Part shown: piece after piece, positions 3,966 to 42,124 of the stretch
How positions within the stretch are numbered: the stretch's first letter is position 1
Layout: each line of letters begins with the position of its first letter
DNA from: Macrostomum lignano
Taxonomy: Eukaryota
Direction: 5' to 3'
Assembly: GCA_002269645.1 (NCBI GenBank)
Contig: NIVC01000894.1
Coordinates: 248,001-312,000 of the forward strand
DNA: 64,000 nt
The notes under the pieces: model-generated
Seen by the model: the letters and a program-made list of their open reading frames with translations, nothing else
The model's database searches: none
Told to the model about the DNA's origin: nothing
Program-made: the position numbers and the translations under genes

Positions 3966-6900
3966 TTAACATCGTGAGTCAGAAGTTTTCCTCAAGAACT
4001 CGTGCTCCAACAGCTTTTTTGCTGGGTGTCTCTCCCTGTGGTCCTTGGCGGTGCAGCGGCTGTAGAAATCCCTCAGCTCTGCGGACCGGCCGTCTGGCAG
4101 GGCGGGAGCGCCCCTCCTGTCAAGATGCTGGAACAGATCACACAGGCTTCTGGCATTGGTGAAAGGTTTCGTACCAGAGGCCATCTGGAGGACCGAGCAG
4201 CCGAACGCCCAGACGTCCGACTCGCTGCTGTACTGCACACTGTCTGGGGTGCCGATTCCGAGCAGCTCTGGCGCCATGAAGTTCAGAGTGCCTTTCAGTG
4301 TCTCCGGGAAAGATGAGTGGCGACGAACTATCTGCTCCAGCTTGATTGACAGGCCGAAGTCGATCAGCTTGATTCGCGTGTTGTCAGCACAAACAATTAT
4401 GTTCGAGCAGTTGATGTCTCTGTGGATCACGGGCGGCTGCCGGCTGTGCAGGTAGAGCAGCGCGCGGCAGATCTGCGAGCGGTCGGTCAGTGAGCAGTCA
4501 TCATTCATGGCAACATGGAACAGGAGCATCAAGGATGCACAATGCTCACCTGCTCGCTGAAGTCTCGAATCGTCAGCTCGTCCAGCGGCTTGTTGTCGAT
4601 GAAGTTCTCCAAGCTTTGGCCGTCCAGCAGCTCCATGAACACAACGACTGTGGCGGGCTCCGGCTGAGCGATGTGCAAGAACCTGACGATGTTGGGATGC
4701 CGCAGTCGGCACAGGTTTCTCTCGCTCTCGACAGCTCTGTCGATTAGATCCTTTTGATTGCCGAGCAGCACTATCAGTCTGAGAGTCTTGGCGGCGCACC
4801 TGATGCCTCTGTCAGTGATAACTTCCTGGATGTCACCAAAACATCCTCTTGCAACGAAGCGAACGGAGTCCCAGCTCTTCCTGAAAATGGGGCTGTTGGG
4901 AAATTCAAACTTAAATCAGAAAGCGTTGAGCTGCTCATCAGAATTATGGCATCTCCGGATAGACAAGCGAAAATGAGGAGATGCATGGGAGGCACATCAA
5001 TGAGAGGAATCGATTGTATTTCATATTCAATGGAACTCAGCTTCCATAACAGCCCCACAGATGCGCAGAAACTCAATCAAACTGTTTTTAGCTACGCGGG
5101 TCTTCTGTCTTTTAAAGCAAATTGAGCAACTTTTTTCTCTGAGCTTCAAGATAGTACCTCTCAATGCTCACTGCTCAAGTTAGGCGGCGCATCTTTAGCG
5201 TGAGCACAGTGAGCCGCGTGACTACTGATGGGAAAGTGCGAAATTGGCCTCACCTCTGCGTGAGCATCATATCGCACAGGTACCTAAGTCTAGCCGAATT
5301 ACTGTACATTTGTACCTGACGATAAGGAACTCGTGCCCCATCAGCTCCAGAGCGGACTTTCTGCTTTTGCGGTCCTTGGCCGTGCAGCGGCTGTAGAAGT
5401 CCTGCAGCTCGGCTGAGCAGCAAGTCGGCAGGGCGGGGGCGCCGCTGCTTCTCAGCTTCTCGGGCAGCGTGTGCGGCATTTTGTGCTCAGCGAAGGGCCG
5501 CTTGCCCGAGGCCATCTGGAAGACCGAGCAGCCGAACGCCCAGATGTCCGATTCTCTGCTGTACCGCGGGCTGTCCGACTCTTCCGGTGCCAGCAGCTCC
5601 GGAGCCAAGAAGTTCAGAGTGCCTTTGGGGGTGGCTTTGGAGTCCGAGACGTGGGTGACTGACTCAAGCTTGATTGACAGGCCGAAGTCGATCAGCTTGA
5701 TTCGAGTGTTGTCAGCACAAACAATCATGTTTGAGCAGTTGATGTCTCTGTGGATCACGGGCGGCTGCCGGCTGTGCAGGTAGAGCAGCGCGCGGCAGAT
5801 CTGCGAGCGGTCGGTCAGTGAGCAGCCATCATTCATGGAACATGGAACAGTAGCATCAAGGATGCACAATGCTCACCTGCTCGCTGAAGTCTCGAATCGT
5901 CAGCTCGCTCAGCGGCATGTTGTCGATGAAGTTCTCCAAGCTACGGCCGTCCAGCAGCTCCATGAACACAACGACTGTGGCGGGCTCCGGCTGAGCGACG
6001 TGCAAGAACCTGACGATGTTGGGATGCCGCAGTCGGCACAGGTTTCTCTCGCTCTCAACAGCTCTGTTGATCTCTGTGCTCACAGAGGTTTGGTCATCAC
6101 CGAGTTGCACAGGCAGTTTGACAGTCTTTGCAGCGCACGTGACGCCCGTGTCAGTTCGAACTTCGTTGACTTCGCCGAAGCCTCCACGGCCAATGCGGCG
6201 AACGGCGTCCCAGCGCTCCCGGAACGGAGGGCCTTTGGGTCTGAGGAAACGCGAATTGAGGCAATGAGGGATAATTTGCATGCTGTAGCTGTGAGTTGTA
6301 GCTGTGTGCTGTAGCTGTGTGTACTGTAGCTGTGTTTGCTGTAGCTGTGTGCTGTAGCTGTGTGCTGTAGCTGTGTGCTGTAGCTGTGTGTGCTGTAGCT
6401 GTGTGCTGTAGCTGTGTGTGCTGAAGGAACTCACGACAGTGCCAGTGGCTCGTCAAAGTAATTTTTTCCGTCGTACCTAAATAGGCAGTGGGGATTTGAA
6501 GTCAGGGGAATTCAGATGCGAACCCGTGCTCTGTGCAATTCATTCTATCAATTTTATTAATCTATAGTTTGTTTGAACTCTGTAGCTAAGGTCCTATGTA
6601 GCTGTAGCTAAGGTGCTAAGTTAAGGTCCTATATTTTCTTATATATTTTTGTGAATTTTAAACTCAATTGCCACAAAGAAATAGCTCGCGCTTTTAAAGT
6701 GTGAATCTCGCAGGCAGCTGAACATTAATATTCTACTGGCAATCTGCAGTCAAACTGCACTGCAAACTCCCTCAATGCAGCTCAGTCAGTGTCTGCTGCC
6801 CATTTAAACTAAAAAAATGTAAAAATGCCCACTCAGCGCAACTGCAGTCAGCTGTTCAATATTCAATCATAAATTACAGCATAATGTTTATCAATGATAA

Positions 6901-7551
6901 ATCAAAGTCAGAGAGACATTCTCAGTCGCCATGGAAACTCACCCACGCAGCAGCTCAGCCAGTTCGCTCTTTCCCTTCTGTGTGGCGAAAGCCAGCGCAG
7001 TCATGCCGTATTTGTCCTGCTGGCTCCAATCCGCCCCTGAGTCCAGCAGAACCCGACCGACTGCGGCGGCGGTGGCGGGGGCGCAAAGGCTGCCCCCATG
7101 AGGGGCGTCCATTCCCACAAACCCGTAGCATTGGCGGAGGCTCCGGCAGCCAGCAGAGCGGAGGCTGCGGCAGAATTGCCAGTCCTGACTGCATGGTGCA
7201 GGCAACTGTCAGCACATTTCTCCGCACAGGCGGGGTCACCCAGCTGCACCAGCTGCTCCCACAGAGCCTCATCACCGCACGAGCTGTTCTGAGCTGCCCA
7301 CATCAACGCGGTGCGACCCGAACTGTCAGGCAGGTCGCAGCTGCCGCAGGTCGCCGCTCGCCGCAGCTCCGCCGAGTCGCCTGTCTTGGCCAGCCGCTGC
7401 AGTTCCTGTCGATCCGCCTCCACCTGCAAAAGGCGAGCGGGAAATTTGAGCACAGCTGCTCAGCTGCAGCCGCATCGGCACCGCAGATGCCGCTCACCTG
7501 GGCTGTCAGGCCGTTGATCTCCCAACTGCATTCACAACCAGCCGCATCTCC
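3966..7551 (-). CDS. Ankyrin-repeat plus tandem double Ser/Thr kinase protein (MAP3K/STE-like kinase domains); 5' start not identified
   Basis: Exons (minus): 7551-7498, 7423-6943, 6476-6435, 6240-5877, 5800-5316, 5283-5254, 4892-4550, 4472-3966. All junctions are GT..AG and phase-compatible. Ankyrin motifs: GRTALMWAA, SCLHHAVRTGN, WTPLMGAA, GMTALAFA. Kinase 1: IGRGGFG, CAAK, HRDINCSN, DFG, APE. Kinase 2: VARGCFG, CAAK, HRDINCSN, DFG, APE. The ankyrin exon is exactly 1 nt short, at the G-run 7077-7081. Confidence 0.75.
6283..6422. repeat. Intronic (GCTGTGTGCTGTA)n-type short tandem repeat
   Basis: Visible 13-15 bp units within intron 6241-6434 of the ankyrin-kinase gene; the source of the spurious HTATAHSYSTQL ORFs. 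Confidence 0.9.
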
Positions 7552-7814: not shown

Positions 7815-8260
7815 AGCTTAAAATTTTGAGTCGCTCAGACCACGGCCAACAATTCCAGCTTAATCAATGCGTATCTAAATTCGGTATCAGAGATGAATCT
7901 GGATCCCGCCTGGACTACGGGCCAGCTTCCATCGGCTTGTCTCTGCTTGAGCAAGAATCCGATTCCCTTAAGCCGGGATGCATCTGTGTGCAAGGCCGTG
8001 AGTTTGCGCTGGTCATAGTAGGCAAGGGTAGGCGTGTTTGCGAGGTTGCTGCAGGCCTTTCAAAGCCTCTTGCTGTTCATGTACCCACTAAAACATATTC
8101 TTCTCTGATAGCAGCGGTCTCAGCGGGCCTGCTATCTCCGCAACTTCTTGAGTAAATGTTCCAACTTGGTTCACGAGACCAAAGAAAGCTGGAAAATCCG
8201 TAATAATTTTTAGACGCTGGAAATTTGCTGATAGCTTTAACGAGCTCTGGTCGGTACAGT
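7815..8260 (-). mobile_element. Ty3/Gypsy pol relic (RT connection and RNase H)
   Basis: Minus translation: FFGLVNQV...IAGPLRPLL...W...PTLAYYD...LHTDAS..GIGFLLKQ...W.VVQAGSRFISDTEFRYA.IKLELLAVV, with in-frame stops. Confidence 0.85.
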
Positions 8261-9920
8261 AGCCATCTGCCGATAAGCAGAATTCCGCAAAGCTTACTTG
8301 TATTCTGCAGAAAGCGATTTTTTTCTATTTAATGAAAATCAGTTATCCAAAAAGCGTTGAAAAAATTTCGAACCGCGCTTTCACGTGCGATTCTCAGTCT
8401 TGACTCTAAATCGAGCAGTTATAAACGACATGACTCAGTCCAGTTCTATGGTATGTAACGCATTTTATATAATGGCTAGGCTGGGCCAGGAAATATTTCT
8501 TAAAATCCGTGAAGGGCCGTGAAATCAGCTAATGCAGAACCAGGGAAGCCTCTACGAGTATGATCGCTCCGCTCCCCAGGAAGGGACACTAGTTTAGGCA
8601 GCATACATGTTTAGGGGTAAAAGCCCAATCAGAAAGCAGTGAATGAATGCAACGTTTCATTTCTATGACTGGTAACTTTTTAACTAAAAGTCATAGAAAG
8701 ATACGGTTTGCACTATTCAACCCAAAACATTCACAACTTTAGGTCTCCGAGGTTAAGTTGTATTATTAAAAAATTTTCGTTGTGTTAGTGCCAGAAAAAT
8801 ACTTTACAACCCATCGCGCTGTAATATAGATAATAATAATAGATAGTAAAACAAAAAATAAAATGATTGGCCTTAGGTGATACTTCAGCAAAAAAAGTAA
8901 AATTAACTTACCTACAGAGTAGAAAAGTGCTAGGGCAAGCTGTATAAAAAAGCACTTTACATGACTCTATAAAACAAAAGCTAAGTCTAATACGAGTATA
9001 AATCAAAGCTATAGCTCATTTCTCAGATAGTTTTGACTTCAAAATGTTTCTGCCTCTTCCTCGCCGAGCAGCGACTCTCGCCGGGTCTGAGCAGATGTCA
9101 TTGTGGTAGGTCGCTCCTCAGGAACAGTTTTGCTCAAGTAGGATTGCGCTTTTGTAAAGACGCTGGGTTCAGCATCAGAATTCAACCGTCGATTTTTCAG
9201 CTTCTTTGCTTCTCCATCTGCATTTTCAAATGCGGAGCGCTTACGTCTAGAGTTGGAGTCCTGAGAGTTTGTTGCAAAAAAACCTTTAGCTTTCCGAAAA
9301 ATGCAGCGAGCAGATCCGGTAGTTGTGCTTTAGATCGCTGCGAAACTACTCCAACTCTGCTGTTGTCCACTTTCGTTGCATTGCAGAGATCCATTTTTTC
9401 AGAAGCTCCGGCTGTGCATATATACATTCCTGTTAGCAAGCTACAAAAAACGACAGGTGTTACAAAAGTTCGCGTACAAACTGCTCTAGCGAGAAATCGA
9501 TGAGCAACAGCACCTTTTCATTCTATACCCTTGTCGTCCTTGTCTATACCATGCCCCTAAACTCGTATAGTGGAGTGGGGTGGGGCGGGTAAGTGTCCTT
9601 TCATGGGGTGCGCAGCAACCATAGAGGCTTCCCTGGCAGAACATAAAAAGCCAGTCAGTCTGTCAGTCCAAATCATTCCATACATACTGTCGTCGTGTCG
9701 TTTAACTAAGAGTTCAAACTAAGTATCACGATGATTTGGTTGAATAAACGATGTTTTAATCTCGATTTATTATTCATAAACGATGCTAACACAAACGATG
9801 CTCAATATATAATTATTAACGCATTGGGGTTGCGGGGCGCACGGGGCACGAAATCGGGGTGGTGGGTACACTGGATGTACAGTCAATATTTCAATAGTCA
9901 ATCAGCTAGTCACTTAGTCA

Positions 9921-12013: not shown

Positions 12014-12844
12014 TCAGCTGACTGGCTCTGATTGGCTGGCCTGAGACTGCAGCTCTGGCCGCCCCAGCCGAATGCTGCAAAACTTGATGGACACAGCAGC
12101 GAACTGCTCACTCACCGCTCGATGTAGCTGGCCAGCTCTGCGTGGCCGCTTAGCCTCGCTAGGCCCGACGCCGTCCGACCCTCAGGATTCTGCAGTCCGA
12201 GCAGCCGCGACCTCTTCAAGTTTCCGTGCTGTCTGCACTCATTGAACCTGTACTGCCTGAGCAGGTGCAGCAGGTGCTTGGCGCATTTCCAGCTTCCAGT
12301 CCGCGCCGCCTCCATCAGCGGAGTGGCGCCGTTGTCGTTCCGCAGCCACTTCGCATCGAACGACAGCAGCGTCAGCAGCCGCAGGTGGTCCCGCCGGGCT
12401 GCCAGGTGCGCAGCCGTGTCGCCATTCACGTCAGCCGCCTTGGGGTTCGCGCCAAGCTCAAATAAGTACAAGATGCACTTTTCAGTGTGCACTGGAGTCT
12501 CAGGAGCGTCGGCCACCTGCATGAGGACGGTCCGACGAGCTGCATCAGCGCTGGTGACCAGCTGGCGCGTTGCCAGCCACCGCACCCGGCCGAAGTCACC
12601 TCGGATGACGAGCTGGGCGAGAGTCTGGAGATCGGCTGGTGAGTCTCCGACGCTTGCCCGGTTGTTGGGGTCCGGCTGAGTGAGTTTCTGCAACTTCAAT
12701 TGAGGCACCTAAGCTGCACATTCAAAAATGTGAGTGAGTTCTTTCAGCTGGAATCGAGCGTAAAAATATTCATGGATATCAATTTGCTCTCTCAATTTTA
12801 CTTACTCTTTCGTCAGGAAATGGTGTTGGCCCTCGCTCTGCCAT
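12014..12844 (-). CDS. Small ankyrin-repeat protein (~230 aa, 3 exons)
   Basis: Exons 12844-12806 (ATG GCA GAG, donor GTAAG), 12708-12116, 12074-12014 (after a 41-nt intron), phases compatible. Motifs RRTVLMQVA, NGDTAAHLAA, NGATPLMEAA, EGRTASGLA. Confidence 0.8.
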
Positions 12845-13436
12845 TGCTGGAAGCTCGGTCGCAGGTCGCAGCTCGGCAGGGCAGGGCAGCGGCCGCCTCT
12901 GCAGCAGATTTTATTGGCCCTGGAGCAGCTGCAGCGAATTCCTTCTCACCCTGCCTGCTCATATTGCGGATGCTGTTGCCTCTGTTGTCACGCGTTCGCA
13001 GCCTGCTGGCTCGGCCCTCAAACCTCAGCTTCGCCATTGTCCTCTGGGCATTGAGCTCGGCTGGCCTGGAGCTGCTTGGACAGCTGGGGTCGGGGCGAGT
13101 AGAGGCCACTGTCTTTTCCGCTCCGATGTGAGCGCGAGCACAGCGCGCACAGCCCCAACCCCAGCCTTCAACTCATGGCTGGGCGCCGCACAGAGGAAGG
13201 AGAGACAGAAGGAGATGCAGAGGCCGCACACAGCAGCCCAGCTGCACACAGCGGTGCCTCATCAGCTCTGCCCTATTGTCCAAAAGCCCTGCACAAATCT
13301 TACAGGCTGTGCACCTGCCTCTCTTTGCCGAATTAGCTCAGCATCTCTGCTGTATCAGTTTGAGCTTCTGAAAGTTGTTACTTGTGCCATAGACTACGAT
13401 TTAATACGCTAGCTGAGTGAGTGTGGGACAAATATT

Positions 13437-17598: not shown

Positions 17599-18354
17599 TC
17601 ATTCAGCTCCTTCCGGCAGCAGGACCACTCGAGCAGCGAAGGAGCTTCCATCAGGCAGACTGAGCAGCTGGGCCCTGCTGAGTCGAGCCGGAGCTCGAAT
17701 CTCAATGGAATTCCGTTCCCGTTCTTCAACTCCAGCTGCCTCCGGTCTGTCCAGCAGCCTCCGCTGATCGGCCGGAAGTCTCTCCGGAAGCAGAGTCGCT
17801 GAGCTCCCTTCAAGAAGAAGCTGCCGGTGGCCGTCCGGAGGAAAAACGGCGACCCGGACAGTCGACCGGAACGGCCACCGCAGAGTTCGGTCGTACGGCG
17901 TCGGTCGCAGCCGCAGCCGGAAGCGAAACTCGGCGCCAGTCGGAGACTCGAGCAGGCTGGTCTGAATGTCCAGGCCGTAGCCGAACTGCTGCGTGAGGCA
18001 GCGGTGCCAGCCGGGGTCCTCAGCGAGCAGATCCCGGATGCTCAGCTCGAACACGGAGATCACGCGCTCGCTGTGTGCCTCCAATCGATGCAGCCTCCTA
18101 TTGAGCTCGTCGATTTCCAACTGTTTTCTACGAATTTCCTGCTGGTTTTTCCTGACGCTTTGCGTCAAACGATCGACTGTCTGTTGAAGATTGCGCAGCT
18201 TGTCGCTCGCCAAGCGTATGTGCTCATGCCTGCCGTCAGGGGACTCATAGTGTTGCTTCTCAGACTGCGGGTCATTGAACACGAATCTACAGCCGAAATC
18301 GTAGAAGTCGCAACGGTATTCTCCAGCTGGCACCCGAGCTGTCATTGAGTCCAT
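17599..18354 (-). CDS. RING-less TRAF-like protein (TRAF Zn finger, coiled coil, divergent MATH), copy 1, intronless
   Basis: CDFYDFGCRF...HYE...HEH Zn finger; heptad region LRNLQQTVDRL...LHRLE; YDRTLRWPFRSTV resembles the TRAF MATH motif YDxxLxWPF. Confidence 0.8.
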   Translation of the reverse strand: MDSMTARVPAGEYRCDFYDFGCRFVFNDPQSEKQHYESPDGRHEHIRLASDKLRNLQQTVDRLTQSVRKNQQEIRRKQLEIDELNRRLHRLEAHSERVISVFELSIRDLLAEDPGWHRCLTQQFGYGLDIQTSLLESPTGAEFRFRLRLRPTPYDRTLRWPFRSTVRVAVFPPDGHRQLLLEGSSATLLPERLPADQRRLLDRPEAAGVEERERNSIEIRAPARLSRAQLLSLPDGSSFAARVVLLPEGAE

Positions 18355-20044: not shown

Positions 20045-21660
20045 GGGCTGAGTGGGGATGATGCTGAGTGGGGATGATGCTGAGTGGGGATGATGCTGAG
20101 GGGGGATGATGCTGAGGGGGGATGATGCTGAAGGGGGATGAAGCTCAGGGCGGATGATGATGAGGGGGATGATGCTTAGGGCGGATGATGCTGAAGGGGA
20201 TGAAGCTCAGGGCGGATGATGATGAGGGGGATGATGCTTAGGGCGGATGATGATGAGGGGGATGATGCTGAGGGGGGATGATGCTGAGGGGAGATGATGC
20301 TGAGGGGGATGATGCTGAGGGGGGATGATGCTGAGTGGGGATGATGCTGAGTGGGGATGATGCTGAGGGGGATGATGCTGAGGGGGGATGATGCTGAAGG
20401 GGGATGAAGCTCAGGGCGGATGATGATGAGGGGGATGATGCTTAGGGCGGATGATGATGAGGGGGATGATGCTTAGGGCGGATGATGATGAGGGGGGATG
20501 ATGCTGAGGGGGGATGATGCTGAGGGGAGATGATGCTGAGGGGGATGATGCTTAGGGCGGATGATGATGAGGGGGGATGATGATGAGGGGGGATGATGCT
20601 TAGGGCGGATGATGATGAGGGGGATGATGCGCAGGGCGCAGGGCGGATGATGATGAGGGGGGATGATGCGCAGGGCGCAGGGCGGATGATGCTGAGGGGG
20701 GATGATGCTGAGGGGGGATGATGCTGAGGGGGGATGATGCTTAGGGCGGATGATGATGAGGGGGGGATGATGCTTAGGGCGGATGATGCTGAGGGGGGAT
20801 GATGCTGAGGGGGGATGATGCTGAGGGGGGATGATGCTTAGGGCGGATGATGATGAGGGGGGATGATGCTTAGGGCGGATGATGCTGAGGGGGATGATGC
20901 TGAGGGGGATGATGCTGAGGGGGATGATGCTTAGGGCGGATGATGATGAGGGGGGATGATGCGCAGGGTGGATGATGATGAGGGGGATGATGCGCAGGGC
21001 GGATGATGATGAGAGGGGATGATGCGCAGGGCGGATGATGATGAGGGGGATGATGCTGAGGGGGGATGATGCTGAGAGGGGATGATGCTGAGGGGGGATG
21101 ATGCTGAGGGGGATGATGCTGAGGGGGATGATGCTGAAGGGGGATGATGCTGAGGGGGGATGATGCTGAGAGGGGATGATGCTGAGGGGGGATGATGCTG
21201 AGGGGCGATGATGCTGAGGGGGGATGATGCTTAGGGCGGATGATGATGAGGTGGGATGATGCGCAGGGCGGATGATGATGAGGGGGGATGATGCTTAGGG
21301 CGGATGATGATGAGGGGGGGATGATGCGCAGGGTGGATGATGATGAGGGGGGGATGATGCGCAGGGTGGATGATGATGAGGGGGATGATGCGCAGGGCGG
21401 ATGATGATGAGGGGGGATTATGGTATGGGTGATGATGGTGATGGGGGATGATGGTGATGGGGGATGATGGTGATGGGGATGATGGTGATGGGGGATGATG
21501 GTGATGGGGGATGATGGTGATGGGGGATGATGGTGATGGGGGATGATGGTGATGGGGGATGATGGTGATGGGTGATGATGGTGATGGGGGATGATGTTGA
21601 GGGAGGTGATGGTGAGGGGAATGTTGCTGAGGTGTGAATGATGCTGAAGGGGGATTGATG
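20045..21660. repeat. G-rich 15-16 bp minisatellites, second copy
   Basis: Same units as 15798-16960 with different copy numbers. Confidence 0.95.
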
Positions 21661-22293
21661 TTTAATTCCCCTGCGGAATCTAAAATTTCTGACCAAAACG
21701 ATAGGAGCGATGCGGATTATTCCAGTTTGAAGTTGCGCTTTTTACCATAGATACAGGGGTACATGAGCAAAGCGTCTGTCAGGGTGAAACGAGGAACAAA
21801 AAACTCTGCATACTTGTTTTCTGCGGCTTTTGTTTTGACAGCAACTGAAGGAACAGACAAATATTGCATGTGTATAGGTACTGGTACCTCTAGGTATTGC
21901 TCAATCATTATTGAATAGCCTGTTTTCCTATAAAAATATGGAAAACAATTAAAAAGTAAATTTTCAAAGAAATACTATGCAAACGTTCTGATAGTAAAAG
22001 CTATTCAAGTACATGACCGTGACTTCAAAAAAGTTCTATGAAATGATAAAAATTTGTATCATTGGCAAGAGGCGCAAATGAAAACTACAGTGCTGACTTA
22101 GAAAGCTGAATAAAAAGTGTCTTAGCTTCACATCTTACCGCGCTAACTCCGCATTGGTAAAACTAAGGAATTAATTATTGTACATGCAGATAAGCCTTAA
22201 AGCTGAATCATGAACTGAATGAATATGAAATAGAGGTCACGAACAATAGGTCAAATACCGGCAGGACTCATTTTGCACCCCTGCAATCCGTGC

Positions 22294-23040
22294 TCATTCA
22301 GCTCCTTCCGGCAGCAGGACCACTCGAGCAGCGAAGGAGCTTCCATCAGGCAGACTGAGCAGCTGGGCCCTGCTGAGTCGAGCCGGAGCTCGAATCTCAA
22401 TGGAATTCCGTTCCCGTTCTTCAACTCCAGCTGCCTCCGGTCTGTCCAGCAGCCTCCGCTGATCGGCCGGAAGTCTCTCCGGAAGCAGAGTCGCTGAGCT
22501 CCCTTCAAGAAGAAGCTGCCGGTGGCCGTCCGGAGGAAAAACGGCGACCCGGACAGTCGACCGGAACGGCCACCGCAGAGTTCGGTCGTACGGCGTCGGT
22601 CGCAGCCGCAGCCGGAAGCGAAACTCGGCGCCAGTCGGAGACTCGAGCAGGCTGGTCTGAATGTCCAGGCCGTAGCCGAACTGCTGCGTGAGGCAGCGGT
22701 GCCAGCCGGGGTCCTCAGCGAGCAGATCCCGGATGCTCAGCTCGAACACGGAGATCACGCGCTCGCTGTGTGCCTCCAATCGATGCAGCCTCCTATTGAG
22801 CTCGTCGATTTCCAACTGTTTTCTACGAATTTCCTGCTGGTTTTTCCTGACGCTTTGCGTCAAACGATCGACTGTCTGTTGAAGATTGCGCAGCTTGTCG
22901 CTCGCCAAGCGTATGTGCTCATGCCTGCCGTCAGGGGACTCATAGTGTTGAGTCTCAGACTGCGGGCCGTTGGACACGAATCTGCAGCCGAAATCGGAGA
23001 AGTCGCAGCGGTATTCTCCAGCTGGCACCCGAGCCGTCAT
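22294..23040 (-). CDS. RING-less TRAF-like protein, copy 2 (alternative upstream ATG at 23121)
   Basis: Identical to copy 1 except in the N-terminal Zn-finger region (Y>S, F>S, D>G, K>T plus silent changes). Confidence 0.8.
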   Translation of the reverse strand: MTARVPAGEYRCDFSDFGCRFVSNGPQSETQHYESPDGRHEHIRLASDKLRNLQQTVDRLTQSVRKNQQEIRRKQLEIDELNRRLHRLEAHSERVISVFELSIRDLLAEDPGWHRCLTQQFGYGLDIQTSLLESPTGAEFRFRLRLRPTPYDRTLRWPFRSTVRVAVFPPDGHRQLLLEGSSATLLPERLPADQRRLLDRPEAAGVEERERNSIEIRAPARLSRAQLLSLPDGSSFAARVVLLPEGAE

Positions 23041-23400
23041 AGAGTCGATTGATTTTGTTACTTTGTTGTAGCTTTTCTTTCGATTGTGGCTGACTGAAAA
23101 TGGTGTTTTTGCGATGCCCATGCGGTAACGCTAGCGTTTTGTCAGTGAGTGGTCGACAGCTAATATAAAGAATGCACCGCAGTGGTAGGTTGGGGCAATA
23201 TCCAACGACGCAATTAGATTTTTACCGACATTAGACTAGACCACACGTAGTTTAATTTTGCAATACTCGTAGGAGAGAACGTGGCGCGTATTCTTCGGTA
23301 ATAACTCTACTAAGAGTAATTCTACTAGGCTACGTCTACTAATTCTACTTAGGGAGACCCCTACATGAAAAATGTTTTACAGGCCTACTACATGCTTCAA

Positions 23401-23958
23401 CAACCAACCCTTCAACCCTAACCCTTCAACCCTAACCCTTCAAACCCGAACCCGTGAGCCCTAACCCGTTAACCCTAACTCTTTTAGCGTAACCCCAGCT
23501 TTACTCTGACCCTTTTACTCTAAACGTTCAACCCAGGGACAACTGGTTTAACGGGTCCCTGGTTCGATCCTATCCTATCTCCTTCAACCCTAACCTTTAA
23601 ATTTAACCCTGAACCCTATATAAGTAGTACAGTGATGACACTCCATGATTCAATTACTAAATAGTCGAATACATATACTTGAATACCTGCAGTACGATTC
23701 CTTGCGAACAATTGCAGAATTTTTTCAAAACACCCAGCGGAAATATCAGTTCTTGCGTTTACTGCGCAAATTTCGCCGCTTACATCAAAGAAATGAAGAC
23801 ATTTTTCGAATTGAAATTTTACTGAGCGTAAAGGTGGCATAAGCCCATCTATTTCCTGTACACACGATGTCACAAGTCGGCACCGCATTTGGTTTCACAA
23901 TTCAGTCACAACTTCAACTATCGTTGTAAGACTCAAAATTAAACTTTTATATCTAGAC
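23401..23958. repeat. Older diverged copy of the dispersed element headed by the telomere-like repeat (only ~3 clean units)
   Basis: GACATTTTTCGAATTGAAATTTTACTGAGCGTAAAGGTGGC and AAGACTCAAAA match 15508-15660 and 19755-19905. Confidence 0.75.
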
Positions 23959-25087: not shown

Positions 25088-26701
25088 TCACTGGTACAGA
25101 GCCGCGGCCGCCGCTGCCTCATCCTCCGCCCGCTCAAGTTTTCGCTTTCGCTCTTCGGCCTCCTTGCGCTCCGTGGTCTTGCGCTCATCCTCTGGCGTGA
25201 CCAGACTGTGCCAGCGCGCGCTCGGGATGTCCTGCTTCTCAAGCACGTCTCTCCAGTGAAGCCGCTCGATGCTGTCTTTGTCTGCCTGCATCGACAGCGT
25301 CTGCGACCCGATCACCCGCTTAATACCGAGGGTCTCGGAGCGGTGCATCAGAGAGACTCTCAGACTGATGTACTCGCTCAGCTCTGTCTTGAATATGAAC
25401 TGTTCGTTGAAGTACGGATTTCTCGACGCCTTGATGAGCTTGGTGGACTGGATCGTCCGCCTGCTGCCGGGAACATGCAGTGCCAGCTTCACGTAGGTGT
25501 TCGGCAGGGTGTCGAAATCCGGCTCACCGAAGCGTTGAATGAACACGCCTTTGCACTCGATGACATGCACCCACAGGTACTTGTTCAATTTGTCCATTGT
25601 GCTGTAGCACAGAGCCAGGCAGATGTCACCAGGTCCATTGGCCTCCTCATTAATGCCTGCTTTCAAGTTTTTCGTGTACTCCACCTTCCTACCGAGGATG
25701 TCGTCCAGCTTCTCGCCCAGCTTGGCCAGCTTCAGCTCTCGGCGAGCGATCATCTGGTGCCGACTGCCGATGTCGTAGTCGTAGATCTCAAACTTGATGA
25801 CGGTTCGCCTGAGCAGCCGCTTATCCCTGATCTTGACTACCCGGGTGTAGTTGAAGGCCGGATTGACGGTGTTCTTCACTATTTTGGAGCGCTCAGAAGT
25901 TTGCCCTGCCGAGTGCGAGCGATGCTTCTTCTTGCCCGCAATGGAATCCTGCGACACGTGCATTACAAGGTAGGGATCGAGCTGCTTGAGATCCTTCGGT
26001 AAGCCGATGCAGCTGGTCGCGGTGATGATGAGCTCGCATGAGGGAACGTCGTACTCCAGCGAATAGTTAATGACGCCGTACGGAGGCTGCTCTTTGCCAA
26101 CAATGTCCAAATCTTTGAACGTCATACCGTATCCATCTTGCCGTTTCAAGCGTTGCCGTGAGCCGTCGTAGAAATCTTTAGAGCGGCAGCAGCAGCAGTA
26201 GATGATGAGAGCCAGCAGGGCGCAGAGCAGCAGCCCGGCGCCGCAGAGCACTGCGATCCAGGCGGCCAGCGGCATCACGGTCAGCAGGTGCGCGAACCAC
26301 TGCGGACTGAACAGACCCGCGGGGCTGGTGCCGTTCACTCTGCTGGAACTGTTGCTCCATATCGGCGTCACAGCTTCGTCCTTAAGTTCAAGCGTGGTTC
26401 CAGGCGGCGGTGGAGCCGCAGAGGTAGCCAGGCCGGAGGCGTAGGCCTTGGCGCCGGCCACGACATCGGCGAGGCTGGCTGGAGCTTTCCTGTCAGTCAG
26501 CGCCGGACTGTCGCCATCTTCTAGCCTAACTGCTGCTCGTCGTTCAAGCTCGGAGGCGATCAGCTCGCGGAGTTGCAGCAGCTCCTCTTCGAATTTATCC
26601 GAGGATTTGACAGCGGCGCTGGAGGCTTGCGAGGTCAGCAGAGAGGTTGTCAGCATCAGCAGTAGCAGATGGAGCAGCAGCTGCTGAGCCGGCTGAGCCA
26701 T
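25088..26701 (-). CDS. Intronless synaptotagmin-like protein (signal peptide, luminal region, TM helix, C2A, C2B), about 537 aa
   Basis: First ATG at 26701 (the ORF track starts at an upstream TTG). TM AAWIAVLCGAGLLLCALLALIIY followed by CCCC. C2A: LDPYL, KNTVNPAFN, IYDYD. C2B: GDICLALCY, NTYVKL, RNPYFNEQFIF. Confidence 0.88.
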   Translation of the reverse strand: MAQPAQQLLLHLLLLMLTTSLLTSQASSAAVKSSDKFEEELLQLRELIASELERRAAVRLEDGDSPALTDRKAPASLADVVAGAKAYASGLATSAAPPPPGTTLELKDEAVTPIWSNSSSRVNGTSPAGLFSPQWFAHLLTVMPLAAWIAVLCGAGLLLCALLALIIYCCCCRSKDFYDGSRQRLKRQDGYGMTFKDLDIVGKEQPPYGVINYSLEYDVPSCELIITATSCIGLPKDLKQLDPYLVMHVSQDSIAGKKKHRSHSAGQTSERSKIVKNTVNPAFNYTRVVKIRDKRLLRRTVIKFEIYDYDIGSRHQMIARRELKLAKLGEKLDDILGRKVEYTKNLKAGINEEANGPGDICLALCYSTMDKLNKYLWVHVIECKGVFIQRFGEPDFDTLPNTYVKLALHVPGSRRTIQSTKLIKASRNPYFNEQFIFKTELSEYISLRVSLMHRSETLGIKRVIGSQTLSMQADKDSIERLHWRDVLEKQDIPSARWHSLVTPEDERKTTERKEAEERKRKLERAEDEAAAAAALYQ

Positions 26702-28968
26702 CAGACGGGTCGTCGACGCCACGTCCCCGCCCGTAGCTGCGGCGCGACCCAACCCTGCCGCCTGACTCAGCCTGTTGTTGGCTTGTTTTCGCCCGACAAT
26801 GGCTATTTCCGAAGTCGCGTTCAAGAGCTCGGAGCGAGCAAAACAACAAAATTACACAAACAGCTCAAAGCCGGAAACTTGAGCGCATAGACGATCTCTC
26901 GGTTGTAAATAAATACACATTGCTGGCATCTCACTTCTGTCTCCTACATTAGCCTTGCAGGGCGAAGGGTTCGGGGCGGGAGGAATGCGTGTTTTACGAA
27001 CGCGTGCCGCAGCGAGAGCTGTGTGCAGCGCCGCCTTGCTTGGGGGTCAATAACACGGTGGCCTAAAACGCCTTAGCCAGTGCTTTTCTTCTCAGCCTCT
27101 GCTTAGTGTTCTGTGAGCGGCTCTGTGCTCAAGTTCAGCTGGCATTAGAGAGCTTCTTTTGTCCACTCCTTGCTGTAGCGATGCTCAATGGCAATGGACC
27201 CCTCTCTGCCCCCCACATATTCTACTCTGTGACAGTGGCTGTGTCAGGGCTTCTTCTATCTCTTTTAAAAAGACAGGGCTAGTAGGAAAGAGAGAAAAAG
27301 ATTTTCAGAGAGCGTTCAGCCTTTTGTATCAGGCTTTAACTTTCTAGCTAATGTCAAGTTCATCCAAAATTCAGTGTTGAGCAAAGAAAGAAAAGGAATG
27401 TTAAACGATGATTAATTTCTTGCAAAAGAAATCTTCACGAAAAAAGCCTCATATTTTCTATGGCTCTAGATTTCTGATACGATCAAAATCACGAGTCTAA
27501 TTTAATTTTTAAACTGTAATCTTATAGTTTAATCTAGACAAACTTTAATAAACTTCCAGACCGAGTAGAAAATGTCTTCTTAAAGAAGCGTCCCGGTGCG
27601 ATAATTCAATGCAAATATTTGAAATTTAAACAAACCAGCGGCTTGGCTGGAACCGTCTGGGCTGGAGGTAAGAGAGAGTTGAGGTGACGAAAGGCTGCCG
27701 TAAAAATAGAAACGAGGCTATGAGCGTATAACAAACAGCCCTCTCAGTTTGAGCAGATCTGCGTAGGCAGGAGGTAGATAGAAACACTGGAAAAGACAGA
27801 CAGAAAAAGATGGAGACGCCTCTCGAAATAAAAGACTATTTAGAAAGCTTGCTTGTTCAGACTTGTATAGGATCTCCGGGATTTGCAGTGGGCCTTCATA
27901 CTCCAGGATGCATAAATGCTCGCAATATCCTACATACAAGCTGCGGACTATTGATGCAGTTACGAACTTCATACTATATCCTCATGCCAGCATAAAAAAC
28001 TGTCCAATTGTAGTTGAAAAAATTCAGATTCTCGAAAACTTTACGTGCAGTTAATATGCGACATTTTGAAACTACTACGACCAGCAGCATGTTATAGTTG
28101 ACTCTATACTGATTGTGTGAATCTTTGCAGAGAAAAGTTTTTACTAGCGATAAACAGCTTCTGTAGAGTCTGACAAAATTTACTATAACAAACTTAAGTA
28201 AGAAAACTTGTGTATACACTAAAATGCCTGAACGAGGTGAAACTTGATCAGAATTAAAATTAGCCTTAAAAAGTGAACTAGCAACGGTACCTACCTGTCC
28301 GGGGGTTTCTGCAATACAAAAGTAGTGAAACTACCTTAATTATCTTATCGGTAAACTTTGTTAATCTGCCTAAATACGACGTCTCCATTTGGTGCTTTGA
28401 GTTGGCTTACGTTAGAGTTTGTAAATATCCAACAAATGCCTACTAATAGTAGTTGGATTGCAAAGCTATGGTGGTTTGGGGCTGCATGCGCCGGCTTATC
28501 TATTAAGAAAGTAAAGCGCAGAAAAAGCGATTTAGCTTGAACTGGATTGGATTGCCATTGCCATTGCCATTCCATAAACATTCTGCCGTGCCATTCGAAT
28601 AAGCATGCAGATACCATCGAACGCCTCTCCTCATTTCTGGCAGTGCCAGCCTATGCTGCGCAGAACGAGCTACAGTGTTCACGGCTCCGTAACTTGTGCA
28701 AACTGTACTTTGATATCTGACTATGCTTGTATTAGCTCAGCTGTGCATGGAATTTGGCACGCTCGAGTGGAATGTGTTTGTAAGACTTATAACCAGATTT
28801 TCTACCACTGCCTGGCGAAGTTAATTCGGCTGTGTGTAGCTAGCTATTAATAATATATTAGACAGACTTTGCGTTTAGAAACTGCTAGCGCAGATCGCAC
28901 TAACTTTTAACTCCTTATTATCTGCTAACAAGGGTTTACTTCTCCTAGACCGATACAGACCGCAAAAT

Positions 28969-34742: not shown

Positions 34743-34916
34743 CACTTTTTAATAGACTTTGCACCAAAATGGCACCATGGGGTTGCAAGAGACGAACCAG
34801 GAGTGTCTTTATGACCTAGTTTAAAAAATCAATTTTCCATGCCCCAGTCAGTATATTTGCGGGGTCGCCAGCCAAATAAAAAGTGCAGCAAGTCACCTAA
34901 CTATAAAAGAGAGCAG

Positions 34917-37900
34917 TTATTCCTGCCGGTCCTGCAGTATGTGGGTCTGATGAAAATTAGCCAAAGTTTTGTCCAAAAAGGCTGCCTGATTTTTCAGCCG
35001 CTTAGCGGTTGAGCAGACCTCCTCTAGCCTGCGGATGAGGCGTTCCAGCCTCTCCGCTTCGGACATTTTCGAAGCCTCCTCAGATTCGACCTCATGCAGC
35101 AGTTTCTTCTGGCACATGACCAGCTCCTGGCGAACCTGATGCGAAGCGTTAGACGACGTTAAATCGACAATAAGCCGCAGCTTAGCCGTGGCATAGTCCA
35201 CATACTGCCGCTTGAACAGGCGCTCCCTGGCACGGCCGGTCCATGTCAGCCGCTCGTACAGGTACAGGCCTCCGTAAACCGCGCCGCAGACTGCCAACAC
35301 CCGCCAGCCTGTGGCTTTGAACACGACGCCAACGACTGCCACGGCGCCGAGGGTGTTCCGAGACATCAACGACGGGAAAGCGGCCAGGAGCAGGGGAAAC
35401 TGGGCAGCTAGAGGCGCCGCTTGATGAAGCTGCTGCTGCTGCTGTTGATGATGATAATGCTGCTGAATGCTGGAGGCTGCGGCCGAGGCCAGAGCGTTCG
35501 AAGTGTTCGACGGAGTTCGAGGGGTGGCCGCGGAGGCCTGTAGAACCACCTGCTGCGATTCGTGTGGCTTGCGGCCCTGCAGGTGGGGGTTGTGTTAGAT
35601 GGAGAGCTAGAATAAAAATTTCGCATTGGGTAATTTTTTGTCCCGATAAAAACGGTATCCAAGCTAAGAAGCACCCCGGAGTCGTTGCAAGACAGGGGGG
35701 GGGGACATGTCCCTCCGCAGTAAAATCTATGAGGGGGACATGTCAATGCTTTGCTCACCACTACTCCACCCCTTCAGATCCGTTGCGGTAATCAATAATT
35801 TTTCTTCAGGGCGCAAAATATAGCGCCTTTGGCGCTAAAATGAGCGCTGACAACACCGATTCTCAATATAATGAACATGTAGGAATTTAGTCATGAACAT
35901 GTACATGTTGAATTCTTGGCTCTGTCCCTCACATCATAAAATCAATGGCGATTTGGCGACGCCCCTGACTCAGGTTAAATAAGAACTATAGAGTCACTAT
36001 TTAGCCGTAGAGTCCTATCCGAGGCGTGCCGGAGTCGCTGTAGATTCACTGAGTTGCGTCTCAAGCGCATCTGCGTCACTTTATGAATAGGAGTCGCATT
36101 TCGCATTTTCGATTGTGCAGCGTACGGTACCGGGACCCGTACGGTACCGGGACAAGAATTGAAGCAACTCTTGATACTTTTTAACAACTCAAACACATCT
36201 GATGCGACGGAGAGGCAACACAACTGTTGCGTCACAAGCGCGTCACGTCAGTTGCAGAACCGTAACAGAGTCGCCATAGAGTCGTCCAAGAACTGTCGTT
36301 TCAGAGTCGCAGGCAATAAAAAAAGCTTTAAAGTGATTCTTGGGCGATTCTTTGACGACTTTTTGACGGCTTGTACCATGTACCTTGTAGCATTCAGTCG
36401 TTAAAAAGTCACAGGAGTCGCCCCATAGTTGCTTGAGTCACTAGTAGTGCATTGTTGGGAATGTAATGACTCTAACGATTCGTGTCACGGCAACGCTTTT
36501 AAACGGGCATGCATTGTGAGACATCTTACAAACTATCCCTGTTCTCATAGCAACACCTTCCCCCTAGCAACCAACCTGAAGCCTAGCCAGCAGAGCGGTA
36601 GGACTAAGCGAAAATCGAAATTCGATATCTTCGCGAAAATCGGCGCAGATATTCCGGCAATCGATGTGAAACGCCGGTTCCCAATGGGCCAGGCCGGGCT
36701 GCACATGTGCCTGCATTCTCTGCCGTGTCTCCTGCCCCACCAGAGCGGTGTACCGGTCCTGCATTGCTGTCAGGCCTCGCCGAACCTCCTTGGCCAGCTG
36801 TCTGGCGCAGTTCTCTGTTAATCGCAGGCCCAGCGTTCGCTCCACGTGCTCGTTCAGCTCCTTTTTGTAGACGACCAGTGACATGCTGTCCGGGTGGAAC
36901 GGCCGGTCAAAGTCGTCCACAATTTCCACTAGGCGGCGGATCTCTTCAGACAGGGTGCCGGCCACCTTGCGCTCGATGCCCTCCAGCGTCTGGCGGATGT
37001 CCCGCTCGGTGCTGGCCGCGACCTGCGGATGCGTGGGGAGATTGCGGCGTGATGCTGGATAAAGGGATGCGAGATGCTGGATAAAGGGGTGTAAGATGCT
37101 GGATGAAGGGAAGTGAGATGCTGGATAAAGGAGTGTAAGATGCTGGATGAAGGGAAGTGAGATGCTGGATAAAGGAGTGTAAGATGCTGGATGAAGGAAT
37201 ACAGAGACACTGGATAAAGGAATACAGACACTGCATAAAGGAATACAGACACATACAGACACTGGATCGAGGGAAACAGGCACTGGATGAAGGGATGCAG
37301 GCACTGGATGAAGGGATGCAGGCACTGGATGAAGGGATACAGGCACTGGATGAAGGGATGCAGACACTGGATGAAGGGATGCAGGCAGTGGATGAGGGGA
37401 TGCAGGCACTGGATAAAGGAATACAGATACTGGATAAAGGAATACAGACACTGGATAAAGAAATACAGAAACTGGATGAAGGGATGTGAGATGCTGGATG
37501 AAGGAATACAGACACTGGATCGATGGATACAGGCACTGCATAAAGGGATGCAGGCACTGGATGAAGGGATGTGAGACACTGGATGAACGGACGCAGGCAC
37601 TGGATGAAGGGATACAGGCACTGGATGAAGGGATGCAGACACTGGATGAAGAGATGCAGGCAGTGGATGAGGGGATGCAGGCACTGGATAAAGGAATACA
37701 GATACTGGATAAAGGAATACAGACACTGGATGAAGGGATACAGACACTGGATGAAGGGATACAGACACTGGATGAAGGGATGCAGGCAGTGGATGAGGGG
37801 ATGCAGGCACTGGATAAAGGAATACAGATACTGGATAAAGGAATACAGACACTGGATAAAGGAATACAGAAACTGGATGAAGGGATGTGAGATGCTGGAT

Positions 37901-40900: not shown

Positions 40901-41924
40901 ATTTGGGGAGATGGGATCAGACAGAATTTGGGGAGATGGGATCAGACAGAATTTGGGGAGATGGGATCAGACAGAATTTGGGGAGATGGGATCAGACAGA
41001 ATTTGGGGAGATGGGATCAGACTGAATTTGCGGAGAATGGATCAGAAGAAATTGGGGAGATGGGGTCAGACGGAATTGCGGAGATGGGATCAGACTGAAC
41101 TGGGGAGATGGGATCAGACGGAATTGCGGAGATGGGATCAGACTGAACTGGGGAGATGGGATCAGACGGAATTGCGGAGATGGGATCAGACTGAACTGGG
41201 GAGATGGGATCAGACGGAATTGCGGAGATGGGATGAGACAGATAGGGGAGATGGGATCAGACTGAACTGGGGAGATGGGATCAGACGGAATTGCGGAGAT
41301 GGGATGAGACAGATAGGGGAGATGGGATCAGACTGAACTGTGGAGATGGGATCAGATGGAATTGAGGAGGTGGGATTGAAGAGACAGTAACGGGATGAGA
41401 CCAAAGCGCACCAATATGCTCACCTGCAGGAAACAGTTAGTAGTGTGACCGATCCCAGATGGCAGCACCTTCCTGCCCAGCATAGCATTAATCACGGTGC
41501 TCTTCCCGTTGGACGTGCGCCCAAAGAAGGCGCACTTCATCTGGTTGCGCGAGATCACCTCCCGGATGCCTCTGACTTTGGCCCGAAAATCTGTCACCGA
41601 CTGCACAGCGGCGGGCGTGAGGATCCGAGAGAAGCAGGCCTCCTCGACCTTCACCGAGGCTGCATCGCCGATTGCTCCCGGCGTGTTAGCTGAGCAATCT
41701 GAGTTGAAGAACTCCAGACACTCGTCAATGTAAGCTGAGATCTGCGCGTACACCTGGTTGATCTCCTCCCTCACCTGGCGAAACTGCTTCAACGAAGCGT
41801 GCTGAGTCGATTTGCGTCGAAATGCCGCCACCTCGGCGGAGGCGCCAGCGCGCGGATCGCTGCCTGGCGCAGTGGCGCCGCCGCCTGCAAACGACATTTG
41901 CTGGCGCAACGGCGTGCCAGACAT
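34917..41924 (-). CDS. MFN: Mitofusin (Marf/Fzo1 family dynamin-like GTPase), about 812 aa, 6 exons
   Basis: Exons 41924-41424, 39297-38825, 38717-38620, 38351-38092, 37022-36576, 35576-34917, all phase-compatible. Motifs [56 protein letters not shown]. Confidence 0.95.
37050..38058. repeat. ~21-bp minisatellite (GGCACTGGATGAAGGGATGCA variants) filling mitofusin intron 4
   Basis: Visible; explains the long repetitive ORFs. Confidence 0.95.
38385..38560. repeat. Degenerate ~22-bp repeat (ATGAGTAGTATGAGCACTGATT) in mitofusin intron 3
   Basis: Visible. Confidence 0.8.
39330..41390. repeat. 24-25 bp minisatellite (GGGAGATGGGATCAGACAGAATTTG) filling mitofusin intron 1
   Basis: About 2 kb of a 2.1-kb intron. 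Confidence 0.95.
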
Positions 41925-42124
41925 TGCCTGGAAGTAGCAGCATTGTAGCTTGACTGGATTTACATTTTTTAAATATGAAGATATATATGCACAAGTACTA
42001 CTTAATAGTAGGTTAGAAGTATGAAGTTGAAATAATTTGCTTTGTAGAAATAATAAAAAACAATAATTGATTACACCTGCCCCGATTGGGAAAGATGGGC
42101 AACCGACAGCTCAGCCGCAGCTAT

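Follow-up and report, generated by a model that had tools for sequence, protein, structure and literature searches.

The question raised by this locus is whether a single animal gene places two kinase domains behind a set of ankyrin repeats and, if it does, how the second kinase arose. The stretch analysed (the window) comprises 64,000 nt of contig NIVC01000894.1 of the flatworm Macrostomum lignano (positions 248,001 to 312,000, assembly GCA_002269645.1); all gene coordinates are given in window positions, and the gene lies on the minus strand. The window carries a real M. lignano gene of nine exons, with ankyrin repeats and two kinase domains, extending over 8.9 kb from an ATG at 12844 to a TAA at 3966. 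The best overall explanation of the data, which we consider probable, is that of a nine-exon ankyrin-tandem-kinase gene that acquired its second kinase by duplication of an exon cassette, and of which the present copy is frame-broken.

Exon structure and the joining of the two kinases

With its two missing bases restored, the gene would give a product of about 965 residues, in which a two-exon ankyrin-repeat module is followed by a 14-residue linker exon and by two STE/MAP3K-like kinase domains approximately 10 residues apart (kinase 1, K1, and kinase 2, K2). In this conceptual protein, Pfam matches to Pkinase (1.7e-94, in two stretches) and Ank_2 (8.9e-15) are far beyond chance. An earlier, sequence-only reading had proposed one ankyrin-kinase-kinase gene here, a proposal that is upheld by splicing, by Pfam and by the corresponding junction in a paralogue; the limits it had drawn were wrong, as the start lies approximately 5.3 kb further upstream with two extra exons there, and the frame is broken twice. 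The ATG at 7547 was considered as the gene start and rejected, as its frame stops after 14 codons and the exon is internal by comparison with homologues.

The exons are listed in Table 1. The N-terminus encoded by exon 1 agrees with P0126 (MAQRGKSPFPDER) and P0127, and an AG lies 2 nt 5' of the start ATG (ccag/CA ATG; 12846-12849) that is kept in paralogues, including those at loci L002 (contig NIVC01000875.1 of the same assembly) and L003 (cttccag tc ATG); this AG could be a trans-splice acceptor for a spliced leader. A tblastn comparison placed exon 2 at 12693-12115 (84% identity to P0054 and P0121 across 193-198 aa), and the junction ...GLTAQ/(V/E)EADRQELQRL of the two-exon N-terminal module is conserved. 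The acceptor of exon 2 (ttgaag/TTGCAG at 12693) is homologous to that of the paralogues, with AAG here versus CAG there, and alternative acceptors of the same phase are present at 12708 and 12687. As the sequence-only reading had it, the ankyrin exon ends at 6943 in the phase-2 donor CGT GG/GTGAGT, and a 42-nt exon links it in frame to K1. This linker follows the pattern GY(D/H)(G/D)xxYFxEPLAL and is kept and spliced alike in P0121, P0122, P0126, P0127, P0034 and the ankyrin-caspase P0140. The tail encoded by exon 9 resembles that of the single-kinase paralogue P0122 (...HEFLTKKSDSQC).

Table 1. Features of the ankyrin-tandem-kinase locus, in window positions (a slash marks an exon border)
Feature	Positions	Strand	Description
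Exon 1	12806..12844	minus	ATG 12844-12842, MAERGPTPFPDER, donor AGA/gtaagt
Exon 2	12116..12693	minus	N-terminal ankyrin module, about 193 codons, 0.58 kb; phase-2 end CG/gtgagt
Exon 3	7498..7551	minus	54 nt, versus 55 nt in paralogue; carries frameshift 1
Exon 4	6943..7423	minus	C-terminal ankyrin repeats (Pfam Ank_2 and Ank_4); donor CTG CGT GG/gtgagt; carries frameshift 2
Exon 5	6435..6476	minus	42-nt linker exon, (G)YDGKNYFDEPLAL(S); joins exon 6 in frame
Exon 6	5877..6240	minus	K1 N-lobe (K1a): glycine loop GRGGFG, β3 Lys CAAK, αC Glu ESERN
Gene-conversion tract	5690..6060	minus	K1 shares 95-100% identity with K2 (about 4733-4362) here, the 76/77-nt intron inside the unit included (sliding identity)
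Exon 7	5316..5800	minus	K1 C-lobe (K1b): catalytic loop HRDINCSN, DFG, APE; ends HEFLIV + GTC AG/gtacaa, phase 2
Candidate 30-nt exon	5254..5283	minus	In frame, AG/GT borders; judged not real
Exon 8	4550..4892	minus	K2 N-lobe (K2a): glycine loop ARGCFG, β3 Lys CAAK, αC Glu ESERN; acceptor tttcccaacag/C
Exon 9	3966..4472	minus	K2 C-lobe (K2b): catalytic loop HRDINCSN, DFG, APE; ends ...HEFLRKTSDSRC, TAA at 3968-3966

Two introns contain features of their own. Within the 4.56-kb intron ahead of exon 3 (12115-7552) lies a decayed reverse-transcriptase/RNase H fragment (7835-8290, minus strand; Pfam RT_RNaseH_2, 8.8e-13), with several stops and in the orientation of the gene. The intron linking the 42-nt exon to K1 holds a microsatellite-like array of CACAGCTACAG-type units (6290-6430, minus strand), of which the in-frame reading gives an intronic ATG (MQIIPHCLNSRFLR-PKGPPF...); a comparable array-derived ATG appears to have been taken as a false start in the UniProt model of a paralogue, P0003.

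Whether K1 and K2 belong to one protein is judged in the first place by the splice sites between them. From its phase-2 donor, the end of K1 (5316) joins the beginning of K2 (4892) in frame, with or without the 30-nt exon at 5283-5254, just as the earlier reading had claimed, and if exon 7 is left unspliced a stop is reached 22 codons on. The optional 30-nt exon itself was discarded, as the homologous intron of L002 has neither an acceptor nor an open frame at this place and the exon is absent from P0121. There is no in-frame ATG in K2 before FMELLDG, and an in-frame stop lies in the intron 7 codons upstream of exon 8; the N-lobe of K2 could therefore be translated only if spliced to upstream coding exons. 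No poly(A) hexamer (AATAAA, ATTAAA or common variants) was found in the K1-K2 intron. The junction in P0121, HEFFIV/SPVFRDSWDFVRFVARGFFGD (HEFFIV/SPVFRDSWDFVRFVARGFFGDIQEV), is that of the window gene, HEFLIV/SPIFRKSWDSVRFVARGCFGDIQEV, joined without the 30-nt exon, and the window gene has the family pattern HEFxIV/SPxFR together with an ARGxFGD glycine loop in the second unit. The GenBank BOX15 models were derived from transcripts, by genome-guided assembly (StringTie/TACO), a de novo transcriptome and TBONE, with boundaries from trans-splicing and poly(A) evidence (PMC5730564), and because of this origin a two-kinase mRNA is supported for P0121. In the intact paralogues, both kinases are spliced into one mRNA. 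For the window, the splice phases, the conserved splice sites, the missing ATG of K2 and the P0121 junction all agree, and support the prediction of one gene in which ankyrin repeats are followed by two kinases. As a candidate tandem kinase protein, the window gene has frame-compatible exons and conserved splice sites, and both domains occur in transcript-based models of paralogues; its own open reading frame is broken upstream.

It could be supposed that K2 forms a gene of its own downstream, whether as a tandem gene duplicate or as an operon-like unit supplied with a leader by trans-splicing, since spliced-leader trans-splicing affects approximately 39% of M. lignano genes and members of this family do occur in head-to-tail clusters. 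However, given the upstream stop and the position of the first ATG, a stand-alone product would be without β1-β4 and αC; moreover, K2 begins exactly at the phase-2 acceptor of the cassette, and the paralogue model joins both units. A separate gene is thus considered highly improbable. Alternatively, K1 and K2 may be alternative cassettes, with transcripts carrying one kinase only, either ankyrin-K1 by intron read-through or ankyrin-K2 by skipping of K1. Skipping would be frame-neutral through phase symmetry, and read-through after K1 would give a short tail and a stop (...IVRYKCTVIRLDLGTCAI), just as UniProt model P0002 ends (...HEFLIVRYKF); in addition, P0121 omits one of the three units of its locus and most paralogues have one kinase. 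However, P0002 was predicted ab initio in a different assembly, two full kinases are present in the transcript-based models of P0121 and P0161, paralogues keep both the donor of K1 and the acceptor of K2, the intron between them lacks a poly(A) signal, and both domains are under similar constraint. Single-kinase transcripts as the rule are for these reasons judged unlikely, and the joining of both kinases in one product is the reading retained here.

Origin and catalytic state of the kinase pair

The kinase unit consists of two exons. Its first base completes a codon begun upstream and its last two bases open a codon completed downstream, and because the introns on either side of the cassette have an identical phase, its duplication or skipping keeps the frame. 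Sequence comparison shows the second kinase to be a tandem duplicate of this two-exon cassette. K1 retains the usual N-lobe start of the family, representing the ancestral 5' end, and K2 retains the usual C-terminal tail and stop, representing the ancestral 3' end (compare P0122). The window and L002 have homologous introns leading from K1 to K2, with an identical donor, identical first approximately 25 nt and a conserved acceptor. Segments specific to K1 and segments specific to K2 are each nearest to their own counterpart in L002, and as they are orthologous there, the duplication is therefore older than the split of the two loci. K1 and K2 of the window have 69% protein identity, and the flanks of the near-identical tract in Table 1 are only 55-75% identical between the two. 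Approximately 370 bp of the unit core have evidently been homogenised by gene conversion after the duplication, as far as patterns of identity reveal; in P0121, the K1 and K2 cores are 100% identical.

At L002, the locus of BOX15_Mlig034440g1 (20116-23671) holds three kinase units in its DNA. The middle unit is a perfect repeat of 1,306 bp, the C-lobes of units A and B, and likewise the N-lobes of units B and C, being 100% identical; two kinases appear in the GenBank model and three in the UniProt model P0123. Either a duplication of very recent date or a fault of assembly has produced this perfect repeat. With such a repeat at the neighbouring locus, it might be asked whether the second kinase in the window is itself a repeat falsely duplicated in assembly. 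However, the low protein identity of K1 and K2, their diverged flanks and the presence in L002 of an orthologue for each leave an artefact next to no probability, and cassette duplication is maintained as the origin of the pair.

Apart from the glycine loop, which reads ARGFFG in K2 of P0121, the motifs of the two kinases in Table 1 are the same. Neither K1 nor K2 of the window has lost the β3 Lys, the HRD Asp or the DFG Asp, and neither is, by this three-residue rule, a predicted pseudokinase. The best match to K1 among solved structures is MAP3K2 (98.9 bits, 3.1e-27, residues 4-280; PDB 9p6a), with ASK1 (MAP3K5, 5uox) next, followed by WNK1/3 (WNK1 91.7 bits) and STE20-type kinases at approximately 84 bits, all at an identity of approximately 30%. 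The same set was returned for K2, although WNK and ASK1, its best two families, align only from about residue 55, versus about residue 11 for the STE20-type kinases TNIK and STK24. The earlier label of MAP3K-like is therefore roughly right, MAP3K2/MEKK2 and MAP3K5/ASK1 heading the solved matches to K1 and ranking high among those to K2; nevertheless, WNK and STE20 kinases follow closely, and the MAP3K loop is HRDIKGAN rather than HRDINCSN. The best 60 solved matches include no IRAK, Pelle or RLK kinase and no TNNI3K, ILK or LIMK chain.

Condition of the window copy

Two 1-nt deletions relative to L002 interrupt the reading frame of the window gene and cut the protein off after approximately 220 residues. 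The first is a base missing at codon 7520-7519 in exon 3 (GGGA-GATC in the window versus GGCAGGATC in the alignment to L002); as assembled, this exon reads REMRLVVNAVGRSTA and then a stop (...VVNAVGRSTA), with the TGA at 7508-7506. The second is a C missing from the C-run at 7081-7077 in exon 4 (C5 here, C6 in L002), adjoined by a 3-nt in-frame deletion. Because of this missing C, exon 4 is split between two frames, only the last approximately 44 codons being in the frame that reaches the GG/gt donor and the remaining approximately 110 codons in another. If exon 2 is counted from 12708, the assembled coding sequence sums to 2908 nt and would need exactly 2 nt more to be divisible by three, and the choice of the exon 2 acceptor alters this length by multiples of three only. 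Rescue by alternative splicing was considered and rejected, as neither skipping of exon 3 nor shifted exon 3 sites restore the frame. The gene is otherwise intact: it has its start and stop codons and all sixteen splice sites, and its 565 kinase codons are free of stops. The window gene is a member of the family by descent, and not demonstrably a working one.

Rates of substitution were compared as Nei-Gojobori estimates of the ratio of nonsynonymous to synonymous change (dN/dS), for the window gene against L002 and among four intact annotated paralogues. Against L002, dN/dS is 0.56-0.61 in K1, 0.56-0.57 in K2 and 1.0-1.9 in the ankyrin exons; among the intact paralogues it is 0.31-0.63 in the kinase exons and 0.59-1.63 in the ankyrin exons. 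The contrast between ankyrin and kinase exons gives p = 0.009-0.06 in single pairs, P0122 versus P0126 excepted. The K1 C-lobe of the window is unusually divergent (dS 0.33 versus 0.09-0.16) and is still constrained. Since fast evolution of the ankyrin exons is also seen among intact paralogues, it is a trait of the family rather than a sign of decay in the window copy. As a test for a pseudogene, dN/dS was accordingly set aside: with kinase exons at approximately 0.5, as in intact paralogues, and ankyrin values of approximately 1 or higher in those paralogues too, inactivation is neither dated nor proven by it.

The lesions may be genuine or may have been introduced by the assembly. Recent inactivation is given slightly better than an even chance and residual consensus errors of the long-read assembly slightly less than one, such that the window copy may be a young pseudogene. 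In favour of inactivation, the first 4,054 bp of the window correspond to 29621-33674 of L002 with 99.83% identity, seven substitutions and 0 indels; the NIVC01000875.1 record of GCA_002269645.1 has no coding sequence called where the window gene ends, the overlap reaching window position 4054; and the acceptor of exon 2 is weakened (AAG versus CAG). The opposing explanation, that the gene is intact and functional and that its frameshifts are PacBio consensus errors in short G/C runs, left uncorrected because short reads could not be used to polish a multi-copy region, is a substantial possibility, if something short of probable. Each lesion is the loss of one base from a run (GG becomes G and C6 becomes C5), the start, stop and splice sites are sound, the kinase exons are constrained and without stops, and the Mlig_3_7 assembly, built from PacBio reads with Canu and polished by Pilon with DNA and RNA-seq reads, has 180-312 Mb duplicated. 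However, the absence of indels from the shared 4,054 bp makes the local rate of indel errors look low, and the neighbouring paralogue, in sequence of a similar kind, has an intact open reading frame of 985 codons. In addition, the transcript-based annotation calls no coding sequence at the window locus, and the acceptor of exon 2 reads AAG in place of the CAG of the paralogues.

Several points weigh against the account of a frame-broken ankyrin-tandem-kinase gene given at the outset. As assembled, the annotated start yields no kinase-containing protein, and the transcript support comes wholly from paralogues. The P0121 model is moreover a short-read transcript assembly over near-identical repeats, and because it leaves out one of the three kinase units in its DNA, the exact isoforms are uncertain. 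An AlphaFold2 model of K1-K2, made from a 20-sequence family alignment, has a mean predicted local distance difference test score of 61 and a predicted template-modelling score of 0.45, which is too poor for the packing of K1 against K2 to be deduced. An ankyrin dN/dS of approximately 1 fits relaxed constraint as well as diversifying selection, and a role in recognition is an inference. Finally, HRDINCSN has Asn where Ser/Thr kinases normally have Lys, and does so throughout the clade, in view of which the catalytic activity of K1 and K2 is unproven and predicted only. The same Lys-to-Asn substitution in the catalytic loop is found in LIMK and TNNI3K, which are nonetheless active.

A species-restricted family and its possible role

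All close homologues of the window gene are from M. lignano. In the protein collection searched, nothing is more than 79% identical over the full length, and K1 taken by itself is matched best by P0002, a UniProt fragment with 91% identity. The closest relative with the same architecture is P0121 (BOX15_Mlig034440g1; 985 aa, Ank and two Pkinase domains), which has 77% identity to the reconstructed protein across 99% of its length and whose gene is a tail-to-tail neighbour, approximately 10 kb beyond window position 1. From its near-identity to L002 over the first 4,054 bp, the window is a further version of that genomic region, be it another haplotype, a duplicated block or the product of another assembly. 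The two genes have in common their exon structure, ankyrin module, 42-nt linker exon, K1/K2 junction and the ARGxFGD loop of K2, but P0121 differs in its intact open reading frame, its transcript-based annotation and the three kinase units of its locus, one of them the perfect 1.3-kb repeat. A second relative, P0161 (BOX15_Mlig002250g1/2/4; 1180 aa, Ank and two Pkinase domains, 38% identical, both kinases canonical), from another M. lignano clade, likewise places ankyrin repeats before two complete kinases in one transcript-based model; it differs from the window gene in having many more canonical ankyrin repeats, an HRDIKCSN loop, GEGxFG in both domains and a linker of approximately 40 residues, and its tandem may represent a separate duplication. 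The architecture, which the sequence-only reading did not recognise, is thus already present in GenBank and UniProt, where it has been deposited several times as hypothetical protein, and is undescribed in the literature searched: no mention was found of these locus tags, of a Macrostomum kinome or of ankyrin-tandem kinases, and only a paper on ankyrin-caspases touches the family.

A HMMER search with the K1-K2 sequence was exhaustive over 1.84 billion representative proteins and returned approximately 30 hits of at least 37% identity. All six of those looked up by source are from M. lignano, and several more were known beforehand to be so, which supports a lineage-specific family, as the earlier reading had held, to the extent of the 6 of approximately 30 hits traced. 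Several M. lignano database entries have Ank with two Pkinase domains, the architecture for which that reading had proposed a search; the multi-kinase hits outside flatworms (bird PAK3-like arrays, oomycete and fungal proteins; 24-33% identity) were dismissed as generic kinase matches, unrelated to the family.

The paralogues are mostly single-kinase proteins, such as P0122, P0126, P0127, P0124 and P0129 (about 670-704 aa, Ank and one kinase), which occur in clusters. Among these, P0127 (BOX15_Mlig017273g1, locus L005) has an intact open reading frame and is pseudokinase-like, with CAAN (β3 Lys to Asn) and YRD for HRD. P0123, a UniProt model of 788 aa, has three kinase domains. A more divergent tandem, a kinase-pseudokinase pair, is found at L001 (16787-19280; P0001, BOX15_Mlig009993g1; 476 aa), where HRN, GFG, SPE and an inserted glycine loop characterise the second domain. 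In its GenBank model, translation begins at an internal Met and a duplicated fragment from approximately 7 kb upstream is included; no ankyrin exon was found within 16 kb upstream. In other paralogues, the ankyrin module of the window gene is fused to a caspase. Module and linker exon precede a caspase domain in the M. lignano proteins P0140 (731 aa, Ank and caspase), P0141 and P0190 (902 and 1060 aa, Ank, kinase and caspase), P0166 and P0159, and ankyrin-kinase-caspase proteins occur in several M. lignano gene copies. P0140 has the linker exon as GYEGKVYFNEPLALP and is 72% identical to the window gene over the ankyrin part; in these proteins the effector is a caspase instead of, or besides, a kinase, whereas no Peptidase_C14 domain was found by Pfam in the window gene. 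Such fusions suggest the swapping of effectors at one conserved exon boundary.

Compared with known systems, the architecture joins two familiar themes, ankyrin-repeat kinases and tandem kinases, within a species-restricted family. Plant tandem kinase proteins derive from RLK/Pelle kinases and are not known to have an ankyrin module. Their only homology to the window gene is the kinase fold, and the best matches of the latter (MAP3K2, ASK1, WNK and STE20) do not indicate RLK/Pelle descent. The likeness is one of construction: plant tandem kinase proteins (WTK/TKP; PMC11006675, PMC13478195) also have two kinases in one polypeptide by duplication or fusion, often as kinase and pseudokinase, and are lineage-specific and fast-evolving. 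Animal proteins with two kinase-fold domains in one chain, of which one is often regulatory, include RSK/MSK, JAK, GCN2 and obscurin/SPEG (PMC7957886, PMC12867742), but their pairs are ancient, of different families or long diverged, whereas the pair in the window consists of recent duplicates that still exchange sequence. The TKL-group kinases TNNI3K and ILK have the same order of ankyrin repeats then kinase, although none of their chains is among the best 60 solved matches mentioned above. The ankyrin-caspases of platyhelminths, with one M. lignano caspase carrying a kinase pro-domain, were described in 2024 (Genome Biol Evol, PMC11463336), in a paper that contains no ankyrin-kinase-kinase proteins.

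Elsewhere in the window, all on the minus strand, two near-identical single-ORF (open reading frame) genes of 251 and 275 aa (17599-18354 and 22294-23121), with a weak TRAF/MATH-domain match (24.6 bits, under the Pfam cut-off of 27.4), are located in a stretch at 14-22 kb where GC skew alternates strongly. A 578-aa ORF (25088-26824) has two C2 domains (1.7e-24) and a putative hydrophobic membrane-spanning stretch, giving it a synaptotagmin-like look. Exons of a dynamin/mitofusin-like GTPase (34900-41950; Dynamin_N, 2.8e-12) are interspersed with long, coding-looking tandem repeats (36.5-38.4 kb and 39.5-41.3 kb), and further ORFs have a WSC domain (53732-54187; WSC 9.6e-16) with a putative signal peptide and a DUF7041 domain (61683-62453; 1.5e-22), the latter taken as retroelement-related.

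The available data allow a mechanism to be proposed for the intact proteins of this family. The fast-evolving ankyrin solenoid may act as the part for recognition or recruitment, and K1, with its canonical glycine loop, would be the main catalytic domain. K2 may be a partner with a regulatory or trans-phosphorylating role, in the manner of other kinase-(pseudo)kinase tandems, because its glycine loop is degenerate (ARGCFG) and the second domain is a full pseudokinase in a distant paralogue. A role as an immune or cell-death sensor is speculative, being supported only by analogy and by the caspase fusions; the fast-evolving ankyrin exons, the clustering of paralogues and the occurrence of the ankyrin module on caspases are circumstantially consistent with it. 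In its widest form, this proposal would make the Macrostomum ankyrin family a set of flatworm-specific receptors of innate immunity or regulated cell death, in which a diversifying ankyrin sensor is coupled, by shuffling at the linker exon, to a kinase, a tandem kinase or kinase-pseudokinase, a caspase, or a kinase and caspase together; we consider this possible but doubtful. If it were true, the tandem-kinase members would be animal analogues of the plant tandem-kinase receptors.

For annotation, the locus is a case of a copy both unannotated and frame-broken, in a family of which ab initio models are often fragmented. Recently duplicated tandem kinases are best known as immune receptors of plants, and two-kinase proteins of animals are few and ancient. 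Here, a species-restricted, clustered flatworm family repeatedly builds ankyrin repeats with two kinases, ranging from pairs in which both are catalytically complete to a kinase with a pseudokinase. Because transgenesis and RNA interference exist in M. lignano, the family is tractable for the study of duplication through phase-symmetric exon cassettes, of concerted evolution within one gene, and of non-canonical signalling or cell-death sensing.

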